Shown: one piece after another, positions 3,638 to 17,370 of the stretch
How positions within the stretch are numbered: the first letter of the stretch is position 1
Layout of the letters: every line of letters starts with the position of its first letter
Origin: Paramoeba atlantica
Lineage: Eukaryota > Protista > Discosea
Assembly (NCBI GenBank): GCA_977017575.1
Contig: CDRNVI010000209.1
Span: 1 to 19,676 of the forward strand
DNA length: 19,676 nt
Direction: 5' to 3'
Notes under the pieces: generated by a model
Seen by the model: only the letters and a program-made list of their open reading frames with translations
The model's database searches: none
What the model was told of the DNA's origin: nothing
Position numbers and translations under genes: made by a program

Positions 3638-3920
3638 TGTCAATTGGCAATAGTCTAAGGCTTGCTTGTGGTCTTTTTGTTCCAATGATGATGTCACTTT
3701 TTTGATCTATTTCTCCCCTTTGACGAATTGCTGATCCAATTCCCAAACCTCCATTCTTCCTTTTGGTGAACTTGGTGACTTAGTCCTTTGCCCTCTGCAT
3801 TCTGTGAATAGTTAGTGCTAAGTACTGAAGTCAAAATAAAGCTCTCACTCTTGCTTTTCCCTGATTTGATTTCTGAGTTTATTTCTCAGTTTTGTCTTTG
3901 CACCATTTCTCTGTTTGTTA
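3638..3920 (+). repeat. 5' LTR (copy 2), TGTCAATTGG...TTTGTTA
   Basis: 10 substitutions versus the 3' LTR, all transitions. The left boundary is fixed by the TSD and the right boundary by loss of identity with the other copies. Confidence 0.96.
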
Positions 3921-3948
3921 GATTAAGAGTCTAGTGTCTCTACCACTG
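3921..3948 (+). promoter_or_regulatory. Primer-binding site complementary to the 5' half (D-loop to anticodon arm) of tRNA-Lys(CUU)
   Basis: The reverse complement CAGTGGTAGAGACACTAGACTCTTAATC resembles the eukaryotic tRNA-Lys-CTT segment CAGTCGGTAGAGCATGAGACTCTTAATC. There is no TGG (CCA-end) PBS next to the LTR. Confidence 0.8.
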
Positions 3949-3958
3949 TAGTATCACA

Positions 3959-5063
3959 ATAAACAAAACAGTTGTGAAAGTGCTGAAGCTAACCGAGACG
4001 AACTATGATACGTGGACCGAAATGATGTCTTACTTGTTCAACTCTAATGGTGGTCACAAGTACATCAACGAGTTGATACCAATTGCAGACATTGAGGAAC
4101 AGGCCGAGAGGGAGATCTTTACGAACACAGCCATGCTTATTGTAGCGCATGTTCACTTTGATCTCCAGAATTTGATTCGTTCTGACCAATCAGATCCCAA
4201 CTCCTGTAACTCCTCAAACCTTCTCCCATCGACACACCCTCAAAACTTTGTTTTACATGCTGGTCATGGATGATTTCGAATCAATTGAAGCGTTTGTCCT
4301 ACAGATCAAATCCACTGCAGAGAAGCTGAATTCTCTCACAGAAAAACAAGCTGGTTGAGAACATCATATCTCCAAATATGAGTGATATGAGCAATATGTT
4401 AAGAGAGAAATTTTCTCTAAGCTCAGTACGCATACTGCTCATTGACCTGATTCTCTTTGACCTTCTCCTTCTTCTTCTTCTTCTTCTTCTTCTTCTTCTT
4501 CTTCTTCTTCTTCCTCTGCTCCCCCCTCTTCATCCACTCCAAGAGAGTCTAAGTTTAAGTCAAGACAAGAATAGGATCCAACCGAAATCCGAAATTCCCT
4601 TTTCTACTATTTCAAGAATCACTTTGATATCTTCAAGACCTTCTTGAAGGAGCTTGGCTTTGAGTTGGCTGGGTATGTATCTGATGATGATAAACTCTCT
4701 GTGCTTTTAGTCAGTGTTAAAGCAAACTATGAGATCATGTACAACCATCTTGTGGGTCGTGAGCATTTGACATTCCAGTCTGCATCAGAATATTTAATTC
4801 AACACACAACTGATTCATGTTCAGACACAATCAACCGAATGGAAGAGAAGAAGAGACACAATCCAGACAAATCTCCAAAAGAAAATTTGTCTCATAGGGA
4901 TGTAGATAAACCGAAGAAATCTTGCCAAAAGTGTGGAAAGAAACACCCACTGCATGTTTGCTGTAAGCATAAGCCGAAAAAGAATTCGGACGATATTTTC
5001 CTTTGTGCTTTTGGAGACAAGAAAGAGACTGTTTCCTCTTCTTCTCACCATGCCACCTGTTAG
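3959..5063 (+). pseudogene. gag: Copia gag, with one frameshift and several premature stops
   Basis: KLTETNYDTW N-terminal motif, UBN2-like ESIEAFVLQIKSTAEKLNSL and VSDDDKLSVLL, and knuckle CQKCGKKHPLHVC. Frameshift between about 4175 and 4240; in-frame TGA/TAG codons. A start at 3959 (ATA, presumed ATG>ATA) is inferred. Confidence 0.85.
4468..4512 (+). repeat. (CTT)15 microsatellite, encoding poly-Ser in the gag frame
   Basis: Direct reading of the sequence. Confidence 0.95.
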
Positions 5064-8000
5064 TTGATTTTGGATAGTGGTTGTTCGTGGCATGTTGTTG
5101 GAAAGAAGTTGTTTTCCAATCTGTTTGATATCCATGAGGTTTCTCCTCACATTATCAGTCTTGTGGATGCAAAGACTTACACCTCCAACCATGCTGAGAC
5201 TCTGATTGTGCAGCCTGTGAAAGGTGGCAAAACACTTCACATTACTGATGTTACATATGTCCCTGAGATTAATGATTGTTTCATTTCTATCAGTCAGTTA
5301 GCAAAAAAGAATTTAATTTCAATCTTCAAGGGTGATATTTGCCAAATCTGTTCGAAGAATGATGTTCTTATTACTGCGAAACACACAGGTGGTTTGTATC
5401 GTGTTGAGACTTTCAAAGTTGTGGCTGATTCCCTTCTTTGCTCAGATAGCAAGCCTTCACCAACTGAGAAGAACAATGAAACTATTATGGATATTCATTC
5501 CAAACTTGGTCATGTCTCTGGCCCTGCTTTATTGAAAGCTATTGTTGATCATTATATTCATGGGGTTGATCTTACTAAGGTCGACCAAGTCTTGAAGAAG
5601 TGTCCTGTGTGTTGTGAGGCTAAATCCAAAGCTCATAAGAAACTTGGTACCAAACCTTTTTTTTTTTTTTTTTTGAGGCAAACTTTATTCAATTAGTAGT
5701 TTTTAATCTAAGCCATTTGAATTACATTAAATTATGTTTGTTTTTTTAACCTCTAACAAGAGGTGAAGTTTTAAACTTCAGCTTAGTTCAGTCGGTCTTT
5801 ATGCTGAACTTTAGAACTTCTACAAGTTCAGGCTGGAGGATGCACATCAGAAGGGAGAATAATCCAAAGCTCCTTCCAAGGGAATTTATCCTCAACTTTT
5901 TAGCAAACAGGGCTGAAATGTAACCTGTTCTGATTTTCACACTTCTTCAAGAGCTCCTCACTCCAATCAAATCACTCTACAGCACCAGAAAAATTTTCTT
6001 TAATATCGAAAAACTGGGATTTGAACTCGCCCCCCCAGGGTTGGACATAGTTGAATTTACAACTAAACTACGGGCACCAACCCAACTTGGTACCAAACCC
6101 TCTTGTGCTCAATATCCCTTGGATGTGACACAAGCTAACTCTAGTGGTCTTCTATCTCCTACAATGAAAGGTAATTGTGGTTTTCAAGTTGCTATTGATG
6201 TGTATAGTTGACGGAAACATGTTGATTTGTTCAAAGTCAAGACAGAGAACCCCCACCACATAAAGGGTTATATTGAGGCTGGAGAGTTGGAAACTGGTAA
6301 CCTTGCTCGAACACTTCGAACTGACTGTGCTGGTGAATACGAGTCTGCGTGGTTTACCAAATATTTGAAGGATAAAGGTATACATCAGGAGTTTTCTGTG
6401 CCTCATTGTCAGTCGCAGAATGGCCTTGCTGAGCGTGCGATTGGTACACTCTCAGATATGGCGAATTGCATGTTAGTTGAGAGTGGACTTCAAAGGAAAT
6501 ACTGGGGTTATGCGGTTAAGTATGCTGCCAAAGTTTCTAATGTCACTCCAACATCTGCTTTGAATGGTTTGACGCCCTATGAAATGTATTATGGACACCC
6601 ACCCAAGATTACCATGTACCACACCTTTGGTTGCCTCTGCTTTCATCAAGTACCCAAAGACCAACACAAGAAATTTACACCTAAGTCTGAACGCTGTTTG
6701 TTTCTTGGCCTTTCCGACAATCATGAAGCTTTTATTGTTTTATGGCTTGATGATAGTCGTGTGATGATATCACGAGATGTCAATTTTATTGACAATTCCT
6801 TCCCTCTTACCTCAAAGTCTACTTCTGTTTCTGATGATGATGATGATGATGATGAAGATGATGACCATGAAGGTGAAGTTGATGTTTCCATTTTTGGTTC
6901 TAAAGAATACGAGAAAGAAGAGAAAGATGATGAAGATGATGATCTGACTGTTAACCTCACTCCTGGCAAGATTACCAGGTTGGTCTATTTACCACCTCGT
7001 AAATCCCACAACCTCTCGAAATTTGAAGCTGATGTTGAAGTAATTTGGAAGAAAAAGAGAGTTTCCATGCCTAATCCCAGATATGCTAAGAACACTAAGG
7101 ATTCTGCTAATCCAATTTTTGATATATCTGATCCAAATCTTGATTTCCTTTTGGCTGCTTCTGTTGTTGATGATGCCCCCAAATCTTATGCTGCTGCTAT
7201 GAAAAGTAAGGATGCTAAGAAGTGGAGACAAGCTGCATGTGAGGAGATTGAGGCTCTACTCCATAACAGCACGTGGGAAGTTGTTCCGATTCAGGATGTC
7301 CCTGCTGGCACTCAAATTCATAACCCGGTTTGGAGATTCAAACAGAAATTGGATGGCCGTTATAAAGGACAGATGTGCTTTAACAGTAGTGACCAATTGA
7401 GAGGTGTTGATGTTGAGGAATCATCTTCACAAGTTCCCACCATGGAAACTGTACACACTATTATTACTGCTATGGTACAAAAGACAGCTCGCATTGTTCA
7501 AGCAAATGTATTCAACACGTTTTTACATGCTGAAGTGGATGTGGATGTCTATATGCACCACCCCCCTGGTTTTCCTGGGCCTCCTGGTACTGTATGTAAA
7601 ATTAAAAAGGGTCTGTATGGTATGCGTCAGGCATCTCTTCTTTGGCAAGAAAAGGCACACAAAACTTTTGTTTCTATGGGATTTGTACGCTCTAAGAAGT
7701 GCAAATGTCTTTACTTCTACAAGTATAATGGTCATTGGTGTGCAATTCTCATTTATGTTGATGATCTTTTGATGGCTTCGAGTTACCTACCTTGGATTGA
7801 TAAAATACTCACGACTCTTGATAAACGCTTTGGTATTCACTATGTTGAGGGTCTGGGTCTTTACCTTGGTATTAAGTGTGATCACGATTCTATAAAGAAA
7901 ACCATCCACATGTCCCAACCACACATTGTCGAAAAACTCACTTCTCTACTTCAAACTCAGGATCTTAAGCCTACCAAATCTCCTGCTAATCTCAAAATTA

Positions 8001-8710
8001 CACTTGTAAAGGATGCTGGTGATCCAATTGATATTTCAAACTACCAATCTGCGATTGGGTTGTTGTTGTGGCTTGCTCGGTGTACTCAACCTGACATCAT
8101 GTTTCAAGTAATTATGTTGTCACAGTTCCAAGTTGATCCTCGAACTGAACATTGGGGTGTGGTTAAACATTTGGTTTGATACCTTATGGGGACTTTGCAT
8201 TTGGGAATTACCATCAACAAAGTGAATAGTTCTAAATTTATTGCAATTTTTGACGCAAATCATGCTGATGTACAACTACAAAGAAAATCTGCATCTGGAT
8301 GTTTTGTTTTTCTGAGTGGCACACCTGTGGTTTTTACAACAAATAAGCAGAAATGCACTGCGTTGACATCTGCTGAGGCCGAGTATGTATCCATGAGTGA
8401 TGGAATGAAGAAAGTTGCTTGGATTGCTGGTCTGCTTGCTGAATTGAACCAAAATCTGGGTTTTGACTATCCTATAATCCCGGAAGTTTGGACTGATTCC
8501 CAACCTGTGATTGCTTTGTTGGAAAAGAACGATCCTGAAAATACACGTTTGCAACATATTGATATTCGATGTCATTGGATTTTGGAATATATTAAGAAAA
8601 GTCAAGCTGTTGTTAAATGGATTCCTTCAGAGTTCAATCTTGCCAATCTATTAACCAAGTCTTCAAGAAACCTTGCTTTATTCAATCGTTTGAGAGACCA
8701 TATCATGTGA
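5064..8710 (+). pseudogene. pol: Copia pol (protease, GAG-pre-integrase, integrase, RT, RNase H), disrupted by a SINE and nonsense/missense changes
   Basis: Motifs LILDSGCSWH (protease), HSKLGH...CPVC, RTDCAGEY and QNGLAER (integrase), KGLYGMRQA and IYVDD (RT), SAEAEY and HIDIR (RNase H). Removing the SINE and one TSD restores the frame. TGA sits at conserved Arg positions (YS*R, LV*YL), and several conserved Asp read Asn (QAN, QANV, LANLLTK). Confidence 0.95.
5657..6083 (-). mobile_element. tRNA-derived SINE, 427 bp, inserted by target-primed reverse transcription
   Basis: 16-bp TSD AACTTGGTACCAAACC (5641-5656 and 6084-6099) and an A18 tail preceded by AATAAA. A-box-like TAGTTTAGTTGTAAA (6070-6056) and B-box GAGTTCAAATCCC (6028-6016) have tRNA-like spacing. 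Confidence 0.9.
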
Positions 8711-8724
8711 CAGTCACTCATTGT

Positions 8725-8731
8725 GGGGGAG
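8725..8731 (+). promoter_or_regulatory. Polypurine tract GGGGGAG
   Basis: Directly 5' of the 3' LTR; the equivalent tract precedes LTR copy 1. Confidence 0.85.
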
Positions 8732-9014
8732 TGTCAATTGGCAATAGCCTAAGGCTTGCTTGTGGTCTTTTTGTTCCAATGATGATGTCACTCTTTTGAT
8801 CCATTTCTCCCCTTCGACGAATTGCTGATCCAGTTCCCAAACCTCCATTCTTCCTTTTGGCGAACTTGGTGACTTAGTCCTTTGCCCTCTGCATTCTGTG
8901 AATAGTTAGTGCTAAGTACTGAAGTCAAAATAAAGCTCTCACTCTTGCTTTTCCCTGATTTGATTTCTGAGTTTATTTCTCAGTTTCGTCTCTGCACCAT
9001 TTCTCCATTTGTTA
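8732..9014 (+). repeat. 3' LTR (copy 3), TG...TA
   Basis: Followed directly by the TSD TTACC; retains 4 CpGs, versus 1 in LTR2 and 0 in LTR1. Confidence 0.96.
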
Positions 9015-9270
9015 TTACCCACTAAGTGTCACCCCTCTTCCTTTTCATTCTCACTTTTTCCAATTCATTTGAATTCCCCAAGTGTCTTTTCTTGAACTCT
9101 TGAAACCCAAATAAACCACCATTTACAAAAGGTGATATCAGCAATTTTAATAACATCATTAGCTGATGATATCAAAACATGATTATCTTGATGTTGAAAG
9201 TAAAAATGCTCTCCCTTTCAAACCCATGAGAATCCTTGTGTGGGAATTGGGTATTTTTCTGGCCTCATTA

Positions 9271-9313
9271 CGGAATTTTTGTATGGTGCCAACGTGTCAA
9301 TATTTGATTGGTT
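9271..9313 (+). repeat. Left terminal inverted repeat (43 bp)
   Basis: Exact reverse complement of 16482-16524. Confidence 0.95.
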
Positions 9314-9556
9314 TTGTTTTAATTTAGAAGAAAAAGGGGTTCTTATTTCTAAATACGGGAGAAAAGTTTGAAAAAAAACCTTGAAATCAAAAAGACATTT
9401 GATCCTTTAAAGTGCATAAAAAATTGAATGTACGACTTTTAAAAAAGTGCTTTTTTAATTATAAACTTCAGAGAACAATTTAATTTTGAGCAAGCAAAAA
9501 GTGGAACCTTTCTCCTTCTTTTGTGGCATCGGTTTTGTTTTTGATTTGTTGAGAGA

Positions 9557-11524
9557 GTGAAGATGAACGATTTGATTTTTGAGTTTGCTCAAGATGAGAA
9601 TAGTCATGTTCATTTCAAGAAGGAAGAAAAAAGTCGAAAACGAAAACGAAAAAGTGAAAACCAAGGATCAGCTGAAAAAGTGGAGCAGGAACAAACGATC
9701 AAAACCCTCGAAAGAGACTTGTTTTGTGTTTCTTCAACATCAGGTTTCCCCAAGAACCCAGCAAATACCTTCTCATCTCATTTTTTCCAAGTTAAGGGGA
9801 AGATTGAGGCGATTCAAAACTTTCACAAAACTGCTCGTCATCTTGTTTATCAGGAGCTCGACACTCAAGTTCAATCGACTCTTAAAAACTTGCGATCTCA
9901 AAGTGACAGTTACTCATCTCCATTGAAAGAACGAATTCGTTTATTGAATATTGAAATTGAAAACAAAAAAAAGATATGTTCTCTTCCTGGGATGTTGTCA
10001 GAAGAAGAAAAACAGTGTGAACTACTTGCAATCGCTGAAGACGAAGAGTCAATTTCGTTTTTGAAGGACTTTCTCTTTGAATTTGAAGCTGAAAATCGAT
10101 ATTTTGGAAGGTATTTGGAAGAAGAGCGAAGATTTTTGGAGAGTGGACAAAATATAAGCAAAAAGGATCAATTGCCTCCAAACCCACCCCAAACCTTGAA
10201 TGGACAAAAATGGTTGCTGAATATGATGAAAGCTTTTTGTGGCCACGAAACGTTTGATGGAATGAAATTCCTTGAATTGTGGATAAATTACGTCATTTTA
10301 AAGTGAGGTTTTTTCGAAACAAAATTTGAGACTGCAATGAATATTGTTGAAACTGTTCTTGATGAATTTGCCAAAACTCAAATTCAAAATGAATTGAAGG
10401 AAAATAAGTGGGTGCCAGAAAAAGTACGCTCTCAGATTGGGGTTGGGGGGAGGTCTCAACAGAAATGCCACGATGAACTTAATCTCTTGCTTTTCTATCG
10501 ATATTCTAACGAGAATACACAATTTCGAGAAGAGGAAAAACGGTTGGAAGGATTGAACAGTGAGTCATTGCGGGACGAATGGAAATCAAACTTTTGTAAG
10601 TAAAAGATACCGAAGAACTCAGCTCATTTAATCTTGAGAATTGATTTAATGGCAAAGTGGTGGGCTGACTTTCAAGATTTCTCTTCACGTTCATCCTCAT
10701 CGTTGAACTCACCTTCATCTTCCTTACCCTCCTCATCTTCATCCTCTTCCTCTTCCTCTTCCTCTTCCTCTTCATCTTCTTCTTCTTCACCTTCCTCTTT
10801 CCTTTTGTTGAAATCTCGTCTGGAGGAAGAATATGAGAAAAGCTCCACAAAAGAACGATTTGAGAAGAATCACTCATTGAAGACCAAATCATTGAAGTTG
10901 CTGGTCTTTGCATTTTCTAAATGCAAAATTCCTTTTCGATTCCGAGTTGGTGATGATGGAAATTGGAAATTGGGGCGATACACGGGCACTCAAATGCGGC
11001 AAGTATTGGAGAATGTCGAAAGAATCTTTTGTTGCAATCCAAATCGACCATCCACAACATCATTGTGGGTTACCTTTCGAGAATGTTTTCAAATGCTGAC
11101 AAGTGACCCCCCAAAAGGGTCAAATCGTGAAGCAGTCACCATTAATTTTGAAAAAAAAATTGGTTCTTGGAAGGAAAGCTTCACGGATTGGGGAGGGGAG
11201 ATGGGTTCCACCTGGCGAATTTATTTCCACATTCTGGAAGCTCACGCAGCGGATACGTATCGTCAGTTTGGGAATTTGCGACCTTGGGCAGCAGAAGCTG
11301 GGGAGCAGGTCCACTACTTGGATCGTATGCACTTCTATCGGAGTAGCCAACGAGGTTCTGCAAATCTGAACACTAAAGTCCTCACAACTGGACTTTGTTT
11401 TCGATACAGCCATTCTTTAGCAAATCAATATCAAACCTCTTTGGATATCCCACAAGAAATTCGAGCAACCCAAACGAATTTAAATCAAAGAAGTGAAGTG
11501 GTGACGGACCCAAAATTGATTTGA
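9557..11524 (+). CDS. RAG1/Transib/Chapaev-like (CMC-Transib group) transposase; one frame broken by TGA at 10304 and TAA at 10601
   Basis: Three listed ORFs share one frame. The C-terminal part reads HLILRI...IPFRF...W...TG...LW..F...W...F...IYFHILEAHAADTYRQFGNLRPWAAEAGEQVH, paralleling RAG1 [32 protein letters not shown] (H-x4-H zinc pair plus catalytic Glu). The N-terminal D/D and CxxC motifs were not clearly recognised. Confidence 0.7.
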
Positions 11525-11685
11525 GCTGCTCAGGAAGACCTTTTCCTCACATGAATGTACAATCTCGAAACTGAAATTTCTTTGAAAGAAGATGGTGATG
11601 AGAAATAAAATTTACAAGTTTTTTATCAATTTCACTTCAACCAATTTTTTTGAGGGCTTTGGTTTGTGTGTTGCTTTCCTTTTAT

Positions 11686-12684
11686 TTAGTTTTTCAGAGG
11701 GTTTGATTTTTTTTTATGATTAACAAAAGACGCACCCATCATTTTCAACCCTAAATCAAGTGGCAAACTCATGTGAAAGTAACGACAAGCACGAATGGCC
11801 ATTGCAGATTCTGGTGAATTTTTCCAAAGGATTCGAAGTTCGGGGAGACCAACACCACAACCACTTTCCCCCCAATCGAAACCCAAATATTGGCAAAATG
11901 ACAAACCGAAGTTTGAAGCATCTTTGTGGAGGAGGGTTCCACGGCCTCCTCCAATCCAAATTTGTTGAGTACATTTCATTGGAAGTTGAACTCTCATATC
12001 TTTTCCTGTTTCCTTCCAAGCTGTTTGAAATTTCTCACACATCCCAATCTGTTCCGCAAAAAAGTTTGAATTCTTTTTTAATCCAGTTATCCACTTCATC
12101 AAGCGATACTCTCTTATCTCATACGCAATTAAAAGGGACAAAAGAATTTTCTTCATGTCGTCCGTTAGATGTTGAGTTTGAGCCCATTCCATTAAAGAGT
12201 TTTGAATTTCGTGAAGCCCAAGAGCTATGAGGTTCCACCCCCGAGCATTCTGCTTACATTTTGGCAGGAGGAGGTTCAAAGAGAGAAGCAAAGATTGAAG
12301 GATTGACATTTTGTAAACCTCCTCTTCTGAAGCCACCTGGGAGCAAAAAAACGTGTCATTATGACCACTCTGAGACGAAATGTATAAATCCCCAGAAATG
12401 ACATTTAAAAGGTTTTCCTCAACCAATAAATCCAAGTGCTTTAAAAACCCACCTGATTGATCTGAAAGTTGTTCCAAAATTTTGGGTCTGTCATTCAATT
12501 CTGGATGGATTCGAAGCCAACCTTTCCGATCCCATTCGTTATTTAACCCCCCTTCTGACTCATCATTGAACTGAAGGATTTTCAATCCTTTTGTCAAAAA
12601 AGCAAAATCAAAGGAGGTGAAGGCCTTTCTTTGAGCTTCGGAGGGAATCTCCTGGAAGTAACGATCCAAGTAGGATGCATTCAA
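11686..12684 (-). CDS. TET/JBP-like 2OG-Fe(II) dioxygenase (5' end unresolved)
   Basis: 332-codon open frame with TLLHKDASN-GLSFCQYLGFD-GCGVGLPEL-PESAMAIRACRYFH-SLPLDLGLK: HxD at 11928-11920 and a distal His 51 codons later, in the pattern of transposon-linked TET/JBP proteins. The usual 2OG-binding Arg position reads Lys. Confidence 0.7.
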   Translation of the reverse strand: MNASYLDRYFQEIPSEAQRKAFTSFDFAFLTKGLKILQFNDESEGGLNNEWDRKGWLRIHPELNDRPKILEQLSDQSGGFLKHLDLLVEENLLNVISGDLYISSQSGHNDTFFCSQVASEEEVYKMSILQSLLLSLNLLLPKCKQNARGWNLIALGLHEIQNSLMEWAQTQHLTDDMKKILLSLLIAYEIREYRLMKWITGLKKNSNFFAEQIGMCEKFQTAWKETGKDMRVQLPMKCTQQIWIGGGRGTLLHKDASNFGLSFCQYLGFDWGESGCGVGLPELRILWKNSPESAMAIRACRYFHMSLPLDLGLKMMGASFVNHKKKSNPLKN

Positions 12685-12938
12685 CGTGCAATCATGTGAT
12701 CAGGTGCAAGAGGACAGCCTCGAAAACGAACCCCACTTCCTCCAAACTCAAGAACACCATGGTTCCCTTCACTTCCCTCAATTTTTAAATCCCAAATTTT
12801 CGATTGGATGGATTTGCTTTGATAAGTTTTCCCAAGAAATGTTCAATTCTTGTAAAATCTCACGAGCGTTTTGAAAGCAGCCCATTTTTCTCAAACTCCT
12901 CAAGTTTTTTGCCTTGCCTGCCTGCCCCACAAATTGTG

Positions 12939-13285
12939 TTTGAGATATTTAGCCACCACTCCTTTTTAAAATTTTTCAACAACAAAAAAATTCAAAAAGT
13001 TCCTCAAATCGAACTTTTTGAAGTGTTGAAATAAAAAAAGAGTATTTTTGCTTCCCCACAAAAAAAAAAGTTTTTGTGGAAAAAGTTTTAAACCTTCAAT
13101 AAAACTAAAAAATCCTTTTCAGAGGGAGTTTAATTCATTTGAAATATTTAGCCACCACTCCTTTTTAAAATTTTTCAACAATAAAAAAATTCAAAAAGTT
13201 CCTCAAATTGAACTTTTTGAAGTGTTGAAATGAAAAAAGAGTATTTTTGCTTCCCCACAAAAAAAAAAGTTTTTTTGTGAAAAAG
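12939..13285 (+). repeat. Direct repeat of about 147 bp (12939-13085 and 13138-13285, period 199) between divergent genes
   Basis: Near-identical copies differing by four transitions and small indels at the A/T-run end. Confidence 0.92.
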
Positions 13286-13342
13286 ATCTTTCAACCCTTT
13301 CTTCCCTCAGTTTTCCACTTCTATTTTCTTTTCCTTTCCACA

Positions 13343-15642
13343 ATGAAGTGTTTATATTGCAATTCTGAGATTCAAAACGGTTCAGTTCATTATTGGGGTT
13401 TCTTGATTGTTGCTCTGGTTGGTTTTCCAGTTTAATTACAAAATCGAAAATTGAAAAAAACACCAAACTCGTCGCCAATTATCTCGTTGGAGTCTCCGAT
13501 ATTTCCAAGGGGTTCGATTATTTCGATTGCAACACAGCATTTTGCCCAGGTTACGTCGGATACTCAAATTATTGTGGTGGTTCCTATGTGGATTTTTTGA
13601 AGCGAACGTCGTGGTTGGCACGAGTCTCCCCCGCCTTCGAAACCACAATAAAAGTGGACACAAACTCACCCCAAATTGACCACGAGAAAAAAAAATATTT
13701 CAACCTTAGTGAACAAACAAAAAAGGAGGTTACTTTTTTTTCATCAGTTTGCTGGAAAGTCAGCTCAGGAATTGGTGAGTCTTCAACTTACCCTCAGTTC
13801 TGGATTTGGGAAGAGGTCCTTGAAGAAGGTTCCTTTTGGTATTTGGATCCCGGAAAATTACAGAATTTGCAAAGCAACAAAACTTTCCCTCCCCTTTTGA
13901 GGCCTCTTATCTTCGACGAAAAGAAACCACTTGTCGGTCGAGTTGAAACCCTCTGTAGTCAGGGGAAACGGGGATATTCCTGCTTGCTCCAACTCTGCTT
14001 ACCCTTTCCAAATCAAGGGGACCTTTTCGTTAGAAGTAATTCTTGTGGTGAACCATGGGATCCATCAACATCACTAACTCCGTGCCCACTTTTACTTCTA
14101 AAGGATTATTTGCTGGTTCTGAGTAAGAAAGAACTCCTTGATTCATTGCTGAATGAAGTTTTCGTTTTTATTCGAGAAGACGATTTCCCTGCAACCAACC
14201 AAGCGATTTTAGAGAAGTTGAACCCCTCCAAACCACTCAATCCAAGGGATGTTTTTGAACTCGTTCACTCAACGCCGTTGATTAAAGAAAAGATTCAATT
14301 GGACAGAGTGGATTCTCTTTTTCCAAGTTCTGATTACCTCTTCGTCAAGGCCTTGAACACTGACCGTCATCTCCCTTGGCAAAAATCAACCAACCAAAAA
14401 GCCTCAAAGGAGTTTCAGCAAGGAAAGGAAATGCCAAAGCGCAAGAGGAAGGAAAAATCAGCCCGAGAAACCTCTCCTCTTCCCTCGATGATCCCCAAGC
14501 GACCTCAGACTGCACATCCTCAAAATAATAAGAAACAAACTCCAAAACCCTCCCTGCGTCCCACACGACACAACCATTCAGAAGATTACATTTTCGATTC
14601 CCTCCCAAATGAAAAAAAGCAAAAGAAAGCCAACACGAATAAGGAAACTGATCACTCATTACCAGCGACCTCATCTCCACGAGGTTCCCCACTTCCCCAA
14701 TCACCAGAACTTCAACAATCTCCTTCACCAACTGAAACTGACCAATCCTTACAACCTGAAAAACCCGTCTCCAGTCAATTAATACTCCACTCTCCTTCAA
14801 CAAAAATGAAACAATCACAATTAAACACCAATCCACTAACTTTTGAGCCAATGATTTCAAACGTACCAACACTTGACCACATTCAACAATTCCACTCTAA
14901 TTCCACTTCCTCCGATCCAATAGATCGAAACAAATCTATAATTCAACAACTGCCACTTCAGTCTTTTCAATCAAATTCCACCCCCATTCCATTCAAAGAA
15001 GGAGCAACAAACCCCTATCTTTTTATTCAAAATCAACTACCACCAATACCTCAAGTCATTCAAATTCAATCCAACCCATTTTTTCCTCAACAAGAACCAA
15101 CTTCTTATGAAACATTTTCAACTCCACAAACAATAATTCAACTCCCACTTCCTCAATCTTCTCAAACCCAACCAAATTACAATTTCCGACCAGTTCCACG
15201 AAACCAAACTTCCTATCAAATACTTTCTATTCAATCACCCCAACAATTCCAACAAAATTTCAATCCTTCACCCAAAATCCGATTTCAACAAAATGGCAAT
15301 TCACAAATTTATGGATTGGCTCAACAACCAATGTATCAATCAACGGCGGTGGCAAACCCACAACCACTTCGAAATCCCCAACTATCAACGGTGTGTGGCA
15401 ATGACACATCCTCACAAACCCAAGTATTTTTTTTTTGGATTTGAACATTTCTCTTTTTCAATTAATATTTTTTATTAATCCATTTTTTTCAAAATTCAGA
15501 TGAATCAAATTCTTTTACATCAAAGGCAGATGCAGCAAGAACTTGACGAACTGAAAAAGTTAGTTTTTTCATTTACTAATTAAATTTTTTCCCCTTTTTT
15601 TTTCAACATTTTACTAACAATGGAAATAGATCCAAAAAATAG
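13343..15642 (+). CDS. Unknown cargo protein: Cys-rich N-terminus, basic NLS-like segment, P/Q/S-rich tail and short coiled coil; spliced
   Basis: 683-codon ORF 13393-15444. Introns 15424-15499 (GTATTT..TTCAG) and 15559-15629 (GTTAGT..TACTAAC..ATAG) join in frame to MNQILLHQRQMQQELDELKKSKK* (TAG 15640-15642). The ATG at 13343 (MKCLYC) is one base out of frame, so the start is uncertain. Confidence 0.7.
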
Positions 15643-15715
15643 TTTCATTTTTTTCAAGATTTTTTTGTAAAATAAATTTAATTTTGTTTCAAAATAATTC
15701 AACAAATAATTTCCT

Positions 15716-16429
15716 TCAAGTGCAACGAAAGCCAGATGCATTTGTAACTTCAATGATTCCACAGCATTCAAATTGACTTTTTTTTTTCGTAAATTTTAAA
15801 ATCAACTCAGATTCACACTTGATCATTCAATCTTCATCAGTTTGAATAACATCAGATTCAATCCAATGATGAAGAACGATATTTACCTCCCCATTTAAAA
15901 AAATATTGCCGCGAGAACTTTGCGAGAGAATCTTTTTGGTTCGCCATTCAGAACGGTTCAAAAAGCAAGAATCCAGTTTTTTTAAATCGTCTTGAGAACA
16001 GATTCGAGCACATTGTCCTGATTCATCGACTTGAAACTTCACTTTTTCGAATTTTTTCAATGGTTCCCAAAAAATCTTACAGAAAATTTGTTTTGGCAAC
16101 GGTAGCTGAATCCGAAAAGATCGAATTCGTTTCTTCAAGGCAAAATCAAGTCGCTTTTCAAATTCAGGAAGAATCATGGAGTTCACCCATCACTTTGTCT
16201 CATTCAAATTGAAACTCTCTTCATCAACAGGAATGGTCTCCATCAGCAGCAGCTGCTGTGTTTTTTCCACTCCTCTTTTTCGGCGTTTTCTTCGCTTCTC
16301 AACAGTTTTTTGTTTCCTCTTTTTCGTTTGTTGAATTTTCTCAGTAATGAAATCAATCTCCATGATTTCATCTAATGAGATTGGAGGTTCTTTTGGTGTT
16401 CGTTTTGGCAGTTTCTCATTCCCTTTCAT
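15716..16429 (-). CDS. Unknown basic protein starting just inside the right TIR; frame broken by in-frame TGA codons
   Basis: ATG at 16429 (MKGNEKLPKR...KRRKRRKR). The same frame continues across TGA at 16190 and TGA at 15827 to a TGA at 15716. The listed ORF 16190-16627 crosses the TIR, so its first part is spurious. Confidence 0.45.
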
Positions 16430-16481
16430 TGCCAGAATCAAAAACGGAGAACAAAACGAAAAAAAGTCCGATTTATTTTTT

Positions 16482-16524
16482 AACCAATCAAATATTGACA
16501 CGTTGGCACCATACAAAAATTCCG
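16482..16524 (-). repeat. Right terminal inverted repeat (43 bp)
   Basis: Exact reverse complement of 9271-9313. Confidence 0.95.
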
Positions 16525-17370
16525 TAATGTGATGTGAAGATTCACAAAAGATTTTTTTTATGATTATTTTTTGAAAATCCTTAACTGTAAGTTCAAAGAC
16601 AACACCCAAGAGAAAAAAAATCAACAATTAACTTGGCCTCCCCCAATGACCCCAAGGAGGAGAAGGAGTCACAAATAAACAACAATTTGGGAGAAAATCA
16701 CAGCCAAAATAAGTCACTGAAAACTGTAACTTATCTTTGCTGAATTTACAATAAACTGATGTGATTGCAACTGCTGTGAGTTGGTCTCAAAAGGATAAAG
16801 AATGTTGTGAATGCAGCCAATGGGATCCAAGAGCAAAACATATTGAAACCAGTGAAGAGTGGATTGTTTTAAATTCAACTTTGTGGAGTTGGATCAATTC
16901 TCCTCTAGTTTATGACTGAGGTCCAATCCCTTCAACAAATTTTGTAAGAAATGGTTCACTCAGTTCCAAGAGAAGGATCTTGTGAAAAACTTAATGGAAG
17001 ATAACTTTCAAAGGAATGTTATTAACTTTATTGAAAACCAAAAACCAAATTCACTCCATTCTTTCACCAGACAAACAAACAAACACAGATTACTAAGCTA
17101 GAACTGAGCCAGTTGATAAAGTGCCAACTACATCTTTCTTGTGATTCTACTGCAATAAGAACTAAGAGTTTAATTTTCCATCTTAGTGTCTAACAAACAA
17201 AATCTTAGTGACACACTAGTGTCTGACAAACAAAAAAAAAAAAGAGTTTACAACCTGAAGTATCAATTAAAATATCTTTTTTTTTTTTTTAATTTAGACA
17301 TCAGAGATGCCATTTATTGAAATGAAGTGTAATTTCAATTAAAATATCTTGTGAATGCAATTAATGGTTT

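Follow-up and report, generated by a model that had tools for sequence, protein, structure and literature searches.

DNA transposons of fungi carry dioxygenase genes of the TET/JBP type, which have been found in 11 transposon lineages (Kojima 2025, PMC12730594). Within the CMCT clade (EnSpm/CACTA-Mirage-Chapaev-Transib), whose elements typically have 5'-CA..TG-3' ends, these lineages are EnSpm, Plavaka and ESTA. Similarity to RAG1 in HHpred led to the recognition of ESTA, which makes TA target-site duplications (Kojima 2025, PMC12730594). Iyer et al. 2014 describe Kyakuja-Dileera-Zisupton (KDZ) transposons of Basidiomycota that carry TET/JBP genes, with a lineage-specific expansion of the dioxygenases. 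A TET-carrying CMCT transposon is thus a kind of element already known, and the statement in the initial annotation of the DNA studied here, that a TET/JBP gene was not known from any RAG1/Transib/Chapaev-type element, has been overtaken by these descriptions of EnSpm, Plavaka and the RAG1-like ESTA. No report of such TET-carrying elements outside fungi was found in searches of the literature. Here we describe a DNA transposon bounded by terminal inverted repeats (TIRs) in a 19,676-nucleotide stretch (contig CDRNVI010000209.1 of assembly GCA_977017575.1; the window). Positions 9266–16529 of the window are a young member of a cut-and-paste transposon family that is 7,264 bp long and present in multiple copies. 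We favour, by a modest degree, a reading in which this family has a core-less CMCT transposase, is mobilised in trans and carries a diverged TET/JBP-type dioxygenase as cargo.

The element resembles the ESTA, EnSpm and Plavaka elements of rust fungi and mushrooms in being a TIR DNA transposon with a separate TET/JBP-like gene in a genome whose repeats undergo C-to-T hypermutation. It differs from them in its (TTTAGGG)n-telomere, probably non-fungal host, in its core-less transposase gene and in a diverged TET-like protein with lysine in place of arginine. The transposases of those fungal elements and RAG1 have in common a C(2)C / H(3-4)H / last-Glu signature, of which the window gene keeps only H(3-4)H and the last Glu. 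The TA dinucleotide at the junctions matches the duplication made by ESTA, whereas the termini, CATTACGG.. (or CGGAAT..), are not the CACCAC.. of ESTA, a comparison made on termini and published description. KDZ transposons show the same association of a transposase with a TET/JBP gene, but belong to another transposase group, and no Pfam KDZ match was found here.

RAG1, ProtoRAG (BbRAGL) and Transib share with the window gene a C-terminal module, which aligns to mouse RAG1 821–962 with identical H-x4-H-x16-E-x2-E spacing. Unlike these, the element has no 5-bp duplication, no CACAGTG heptamer-like or other CACNGTG-type terminus (it begins CATTACG), no RAG2-like partner and no catalytic Asp region, and the tail-to-tail layout of ProtoRAG is only superficially like the convergent genes found here.

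The maize dSpm and Ds elements are internally deleted, non-autonomous derivatives that are amplified by transposase supplied in trans. Like these, the window element retains its TIRs together with both ends of the transposase gene, but is missing the catalytic part in the middle. Unlike them, it keeps three further intact-looking passenger open reading frames (ORFs), and no matching autonomous master was seen.

The element and its copies

The element is bounded by a perfect inverted repeat of 48 bp, with a left arm at 9266–9313 on the plus strand and a right arm at 16482–16529 on the minus strand. The arms of the perfect 43-bp TIRs of the initial annotation (9271–9313 and 16482–16524) lie within this repeat, which is longer and begins with CATTA at 9266–9270. 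The same European Nucleotide Archive (ENA) assembly contains nine or more additional copies or fragments, among them copies on seven contigs (L001, with two, L002–L006 and L011) with 89–99.7% identity. L001–L013 are labels of comparison contigs fetched via protein relatives, and BLAST was used to align the copies. The intact copy ends all stop at the identical base beside unrelated flanking sequence, which proves transposition, and four copies are 98.7–99.7% identical, so that movement has been recent. The element is thus real and recently mobile, but it is defective, as described below.

TA is present at 9269–9270 and 16525–16526, as annotated; that it is a duplication is unproven, since CATTA precedes CGGAATT at 8/8 intact ends seen. 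Either CAT is part of the terminus, which would then be of the form 5'-CA..TG-3' with no visible duplication, or there is a near-absolute preference for a CAT|TA|ATG target. In both complete copies the outer flanks are not repeats (ggcct / tgatg in the window; caact / aaatc in L004), and neither has a duplication of 1–5 bp when CATTA is taken as the terminus. No empty site was found at any junction when the flanks were all compared by BLAST with every fetched locus, and the 20-nt core of the TIR found nothing in a metagenome scan.

Two of the copies show rearrangements. L001:1-12792 contains two copies in the same orientation with 300 bp between them, the second of which lacks the outer 15 bp of the right TIR. 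The copy at L011:1801-7608 has a clean internal deletion of the segment corresponding to window 9728-10653 and is truncated at 16005.

Four ORF blocks lie in the order +,-,+,- at 9557–11524, 11686–12684, 13393–15444 and 15827–16627. The four genes that had been proposed in this order correspond to these blocks, although the plus gene at the left and the right-hand gene are each split by stops. The ORF map bears out the convergent gene ends at 11524 and 11686.

A transposase gene with a RAG1-like tail

The plus gene consists of three ORFs in the same frame, separated by a TGA (10304) and a TAA (10601). The N-terminal part (9563–10303, +) is coiled-coil-like and contains a 'WLLNMMKAF..KFLELWI' block; it matches, by tblastn, residues 116–212 of L010 ORF1 (E=1e-5) and residues 308–377 of L007 ORF1. 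Every copy has the in-frame TGA (10304–10306), which overlaps a donor-like sequence, GTGAGG; it marks either an old stop or the point at which an intron begins. The TAA (10601–10603) is confined to the young subfamily, in which it is a nonsense mutation, because the older copies L003, L004 and L006 have GAA at this position; L002 has AAA. The tail ORF (10634–11524, +) begins with a Ser-rich tract (~10690–10800), followed by a RAG1-like module with H144 (11228–11230), H149 (11243–11245), E166 (11294–11296) and E169 (11303–11305).

In an exhaustive HMMER search, 1.84 billion representative proteins yielded no more than 15 relatives of the tail; these are metagenome proteins with 37–47% identity and no Pfam domains. 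A profile of these relatives searched against the PDB matched RAG1 only (14 RAG1 sequences, best E=0.004), aligned at YFHKTLAH...EGNE. The tail profile found nothing in a metagenome scan. The H-x4-H-x16-E-x2-E spacing of the tail is that of RAG1 H937/H942/E959/E962. The H(3-4)H and last-Glu signature of CMCT transposases is therefore present, with H144, H149 and E169 invariant or nearly so and aligned to RAG1 H937, H942 and E962.

Modelling of the tail with AlphaFold2 (14 sequences) gave a predicted local distance difference test score (pLDDT) of 70.8 and a predicted template modelling score of 0.62. As the initial annotation had anticipated, the top 13 Foldseek matches of this model were all RAG1, with probability up to 0.97, but with E only ~0.1. 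In VIA-align, residues 23–170 of the model aligned to mouse RAG1 821–962 with a Z of 7.7 (root-mean-square deviation 4.5 Å, 129 residues), BbRAGL reached a Z of 7.0 and HzTransib 6.5, and the RAG1, RAGL and Transib matches together covered Z values of 6.3–7.7 over 125–147 residues. In a search independent of Foldseek, BbRAGL (136 residues) and HzTransib (132) alone spanned model residues 23/28–175, with all other rows at 120 residues or fewer. It counts against the assignment that generic helical bundles reach an equal Z on 65–85 residues, so that the Z of the tail does not rise above background. The fold evidence is supportive, but not decisive alone.

On the profile match, the motif spacing and the fold taken together, the tail is accepted as a RAG1-related (CMCT) C-terminal module. 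Since structures of EnSpm, Chapaev and ESTA are absent from the PDB, RAG1/Transib cannot here be distinguished from the CMCT clade as a whole. The earlier description of a RAG1/Transib-like transposase is upheld for the tail, by profile and more weakly by fold, but not in its narrower sense, as Transib-specific features are absent.

Loss of the catalytic core

Full-length relatives of the gene were found in L007, which belongs to the same assembly and has ORFs of 865 and 645 codons, in L010, with ORFs of 456 and 764 codons, and in L008. Conserved among them are the blocks 'WKLHxDGR', 'FPF(I/L)I..G.ES', 'HHCVF.MCGDLA...CPxC' and 'LHCLLR(V/I)GEF'. The window gene matches the full-length relatives at two places only, corresponding to L010 ORF1 residues 116–212 and ORF2 residues 538–749, and ~780 residues of the relatives are replaced by ~180 unrelated, partly Ser-repeat residues. 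By tblastn, the region of the first and second catalytic Asp of the RNase H-like core is absent from the window gene, candidate blocks being present only in L007, L008 and L010. The C(2)C motif, which is invariant (C38, C41) in the core alignment of the relatives, is also absent from it. The core blocks were not found elsewhere in the element, either by tblastn (E<=5–10) or by hhalign against the N-terminal 369 residues of ORF683, an orphan reading frame described below. Profiles of the relatives' core region gave no sequence match to RAG1.

A working RAG1/Transib-type transposase is therefore not encoded here; the gene is a remnant in which neither the catalytic Asp region nor the CxxC of its full-length relatives is left. 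The core-less structure is common to all copies, including those that have diverged by 7–10%. The family is non-autonomous, since the transposase core has been lost and the young copies carry nonsense codons besides.

Three relatives have features of their own. L007:1500-6130 contains a full-length paralogue of the transposase that appears intact, with its ORFs 95 bp apart and 40% identity to the window tail; the ends of its element lie outside the contig. L013:550-1293, the non-self relative closest to the tail (46% identical and derived from a different metagenome), also seems to pass directly from an 'HHHC' remnant into the tail, and core-deleted derivatives may be common in this transposase lineage. 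At L008:3931-4689 on the minus strand, in another metagenome, a related transposase has a different convergent gene downstream, with a weak Pfam TIR_2 match (Toll/interleukin-receptor, E=0.004, below the cut-off), and the lineage may be prone to carrying passenger genes in convergent orientation.

A TET/JBP-like reading frame

The ORF convergent with the transposase gene has 332 codons (11686–12684, minus strand). The HxD...H motif that had been noticed in it is confirmed, with HKD at 11928–11920 and the distal histidine at 11775–11773. In the ORF, HKD is followed after 20 residues by GCGVGLP, after a further 20 residues by YFHMSLP, and then by K-MM-GASF. These correspond to a set of four motifs (HxD, GxG-hydrophobic-x-hydrophobic-P, aromatic-x-H-x-S/T-x-P and basic-x-G-x-S) with the order and spacing found in TET proteins of fungal transposons. 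The fungal sequences include HQD..GHGFLFP..FEHCTTMPP..GCSF and HSD..GGEFVFP..FAHLTLP..RLGYSV (Table S1 of Kojima 2025, PMC12730594). A regular expression for the composite motif matched 0/200,000 shuffles of the ORF and, among 242,000 translated residues, occurred only in copies of the TET-like ORF. These motifs suggest that the ORF probably encodes a dioxygenase.

The protein collection contains 35 distinct sequence variants of the ORF, and tblastn of the ORF against phage genomes returned only noise. The initial annotation had asked whether some TIR-bounded copies lack the dioxygenase gene; every such copy examined keeps both the transposase remnant and the TET-like gene. No TET-like gene was detected near the related transposases in L007, L008, L010 and L013. 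Because it is present in every copy of the family and was not detected near those relatives, the TET-like gene is taken to be a family-specific acquisition.

C-to-T decay of older copies

Copies L002, L003, L004 and L006 were compared with the young copy in the window. The older copies show C-to-T or G-to-A changes at 37–56% of CpG positions, compared with 4–17% of other C/G positions and changes at 0.3–1.2% of A/T positions. Decay at CpG is ~48% whatever the 5' neighbour base. This is the signature of cytosine methylation, of a process like repeat-induced point mutation (RIP) acting on repeats, or of both. An analysis of the ratio of nonsynonymous to synonymous substitutions (dN/dS) on the master lineage was abandoned, as differences from the 'old consensus' were dominated by parallel CpG changes.

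In rust fungi, an element-borne 5-methylcytosine (5mC) oxidase has been proposed to counter silencing and decay pressure of this sort (Kojima 2025, PMC12730594). By analogy, a 5mC oxidase borne by the present element would plausibly counter exactly the decay seen in its older copies.

Discussion

The plus gene is the remnant of a DDE transposase of the CMCT clade, to which RAG1 and ESTA also belong. It has kept its N-terminal region and the C-terminal module with the zinc-binding histidines and the last Glu, and is without the ~780 residues with the catalytic aspartates and the CxxC; in the young subfamily a fresh nonsense codon has been added. Such a family would be unable to move itself. The recent spread of a defective family suggests that transposase is supplied in trans, presumably by a full-length relative, and L007, whose two ORFs appear intact in the same assembly, may be one such relative. 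The convergent ORF most likely represents captured cargo that encodes a diverged Fe(II) dioxygenase of the TET/JBP type. This enzyme is predicted to oxidise 5mC (or thymine) on the element DNA, and could thereby blunt methylation-linked silencing and C-to-T decay.

A number of observations weigh against this interpretation. As regards the dioxygenase, the ORF has no ATG at its start. It gave no Pfam Tet_JBP or PDB sequence match up to E=10 and no PHROG or NCBIfam match at lenient thresholds, a PDB sequence search with its C-terminal 107 residues found nothing, and word-seeded database searches (the second with residues 180–332, E<=10) returned only its own copies. Its AlphaFold2 model, made from 7 near-identical sequences, is unusable (pLDDT 31.9). 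A lysine (11745–11743, in 'K-MM-GASF') stands at the position of the 2-oxoglutarate-binding arginine, where the fungal sequences have R-x-G-x-S, and the composite motif pattern was partly tuned after the ORF sequence had been seen. The assignment to TET/JBP that was originally made thus holds for the motifs but finds no counterpart in the profile and PDB sequence searches. Together with the lack of such a gene beside the related transposases, these points would fit an ORF that is not a dioxygenase at all, but a lineage-specific orphan or a non-coding frame in which HxD...H is a chance pattern. In that case the element would be a non-autonomous CMCT transposon of the ordinary kind, carrying orphan genes as passengers. 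We regard this as unlikely, since four ordered motifs match those of fungal transposon TET/JBP proteins and were not reproduced together by shuffling, and since the 332-codon frame is open in the young copies while other genes of the element have gained stops.

As regards mobilisation and the ends of the element, no autonomous copy with the same TIRs was seen and the source of transposase in trans was not found, no target-site duplication could be established, and introns are likely to be present, which makes the gene models uncertain. The element might instead be autonomous, if its catalytic function resided in ORF683, the right-end gene or exons that went unrecognised, or if the short protein sufficed by itself. 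The recent movement of the four near-identical copies would be accounted for in this way, as would the presence of two orphan genes of unassigned role in gene models blurred by introns. It is nevertheless very improbable: neither tblastn nor hhalign against the N-terminal 369 residues of ORF683 picked up any trace of the conserved core in the element, and in the young copies both the plus gene and the right-end gene are broken by nonsense codons at sites that encode amino acids in older copies. The termini would also permit a true ESTA-type element, with TA as the target-site duplication, a terminus at CGGAATT... and insertion into a preferred CAT|TA|ATG palindrome, which predicts CATTAATG as the empty site. 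TA flanks both ends of both complete copies, which show no other short duplication if CATTA is the terminus, and TA duplications, a likeness to RAG1 in HHpred and TET cargo are all features of ESTA elements. An ESTA-type origin nonetheless appears doubtful, because the identity of CAT at 8/8 ends would require near-absolute specificity for an 8-bp target, the ESTA termini (CACCAC..GTGGTG) are unlike CGGAAT, and a terminus at CATTA would give the ends typical of the clade.

If the preferred reading of a trans-mobilised family with a dioxygenase as cargo is adopted, it is possible, and we put it forward tentatively, that capture of TET/JBP genes extends beyond fungi. A non-fungal protist with RIP-like, CpG-biased decay would be host to an undescribed CMCT lineage (~15 relatives among 1.84 billion proteins), in which one non-autonomous family retains and spreads a highly diverged TET/JBP enzyme with lysine at the co-substrate site. 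Were this so, it would be a case of convergent anti-silencing cargo across eukaryotes. Should both the dioxygenase and the non-fungal host hold, transposon-borne TET/JBP genes would be extended beyond the three fungal lineages in which they are catalogued. This would support the oxidation of methylated bases as a recurrent counter-defence of transposons, in a genome where the decay of repeats can be measured directly. L007 and L010 define a rare, unannotated branch of RAG1-related transposases, which could inform the evolution of the C-terminal zinc/Glu module of RAG1.

Passenger genes and chromosomal setting

Scans of the ORFs of the element against Pfam, PHROGs and NCBIfam gave no meaningful match overall. 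The intergenic region that separates the divergently oriented TET-like ORF and ORF683 contains a duplicated segment (12939–13296) made up of two ~160-bp copies that are 93–94% alike and are associated with cross-matches and duplicated ORF tails. ORF683 (13393–15444, +) is an orphan of 683 codons, with a non-repetitive N-terminal region of ~345 residues and a Q/P/S-rich C-terminal half. Its relatives were found only in other copies of the element, and it has no Pfam, PHROG or NCBIfam match. It was considered as the missing transposase core and rejected, as hhalign of the core profiles showed no similarity to its N-terminal 369 residues. The right-end orphan gene (15827–16429, minus strand) encodes a protein with a basic stretch like a nuclear localisation signal, and is interrupted by a TGA at 16190–16192 that is specific to the young copies; L004 has TGG at this position.

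Recoding of TGA as tryptophan was also considered, as the stored proteins P0002, P0005, P0006 and P0024 show W at TGA. It was rejected: the loci do not yield these proteins under the standard code, so that the W at TGA is taken to be an artefact of a metagenome gene caller. Reassignment of stop codons is countered as well by the sense codons of older copies, GAA at TAA 10601 in three of them and TGG at TGA 16190 in L004. The public gene calls on L002, L004, L006 and L011 read TGA as tryptophan, in a manner like translation table 4, and so artificially lengthen decayed ORFs. On the minus strand, a Lys/Arg-rich frame of 135 codons (10506–10913) lies antisense to the Ser-repeat tract of the transposase gene and probably exists only as a consequence of the (TCC/TCT)n repeat.

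No host genes or Rfam families were found in the window. Positions 1–745 consist of ~106 perfect CCCTAAA units, equivalent to a (TTTAGGG)n telomere, and the start of the window is a eukaryotic chromosome end; the host is probably not a fungus. The element lies ~8.5 kb from this (CCCTAAA)n telomere. Near the telomere, a block of ~40 bp (gacaaccaaagataaccatacttttgagtaatttaaacc) recurs at ~746–786 and ~1111–1151. On the telomere side of the element is a Copia-type retrotransposon (3638–9014) with RVT_2, integrase and gag-pre-integrase domains. Its long terminal repeat is present three times in the window, with 95.7–96.5% identity: the copies at 3638–3920 and 8666–9015 bound the Copia element, and that at 1407–1756, nearer the telomere, resembles a solo repeat.

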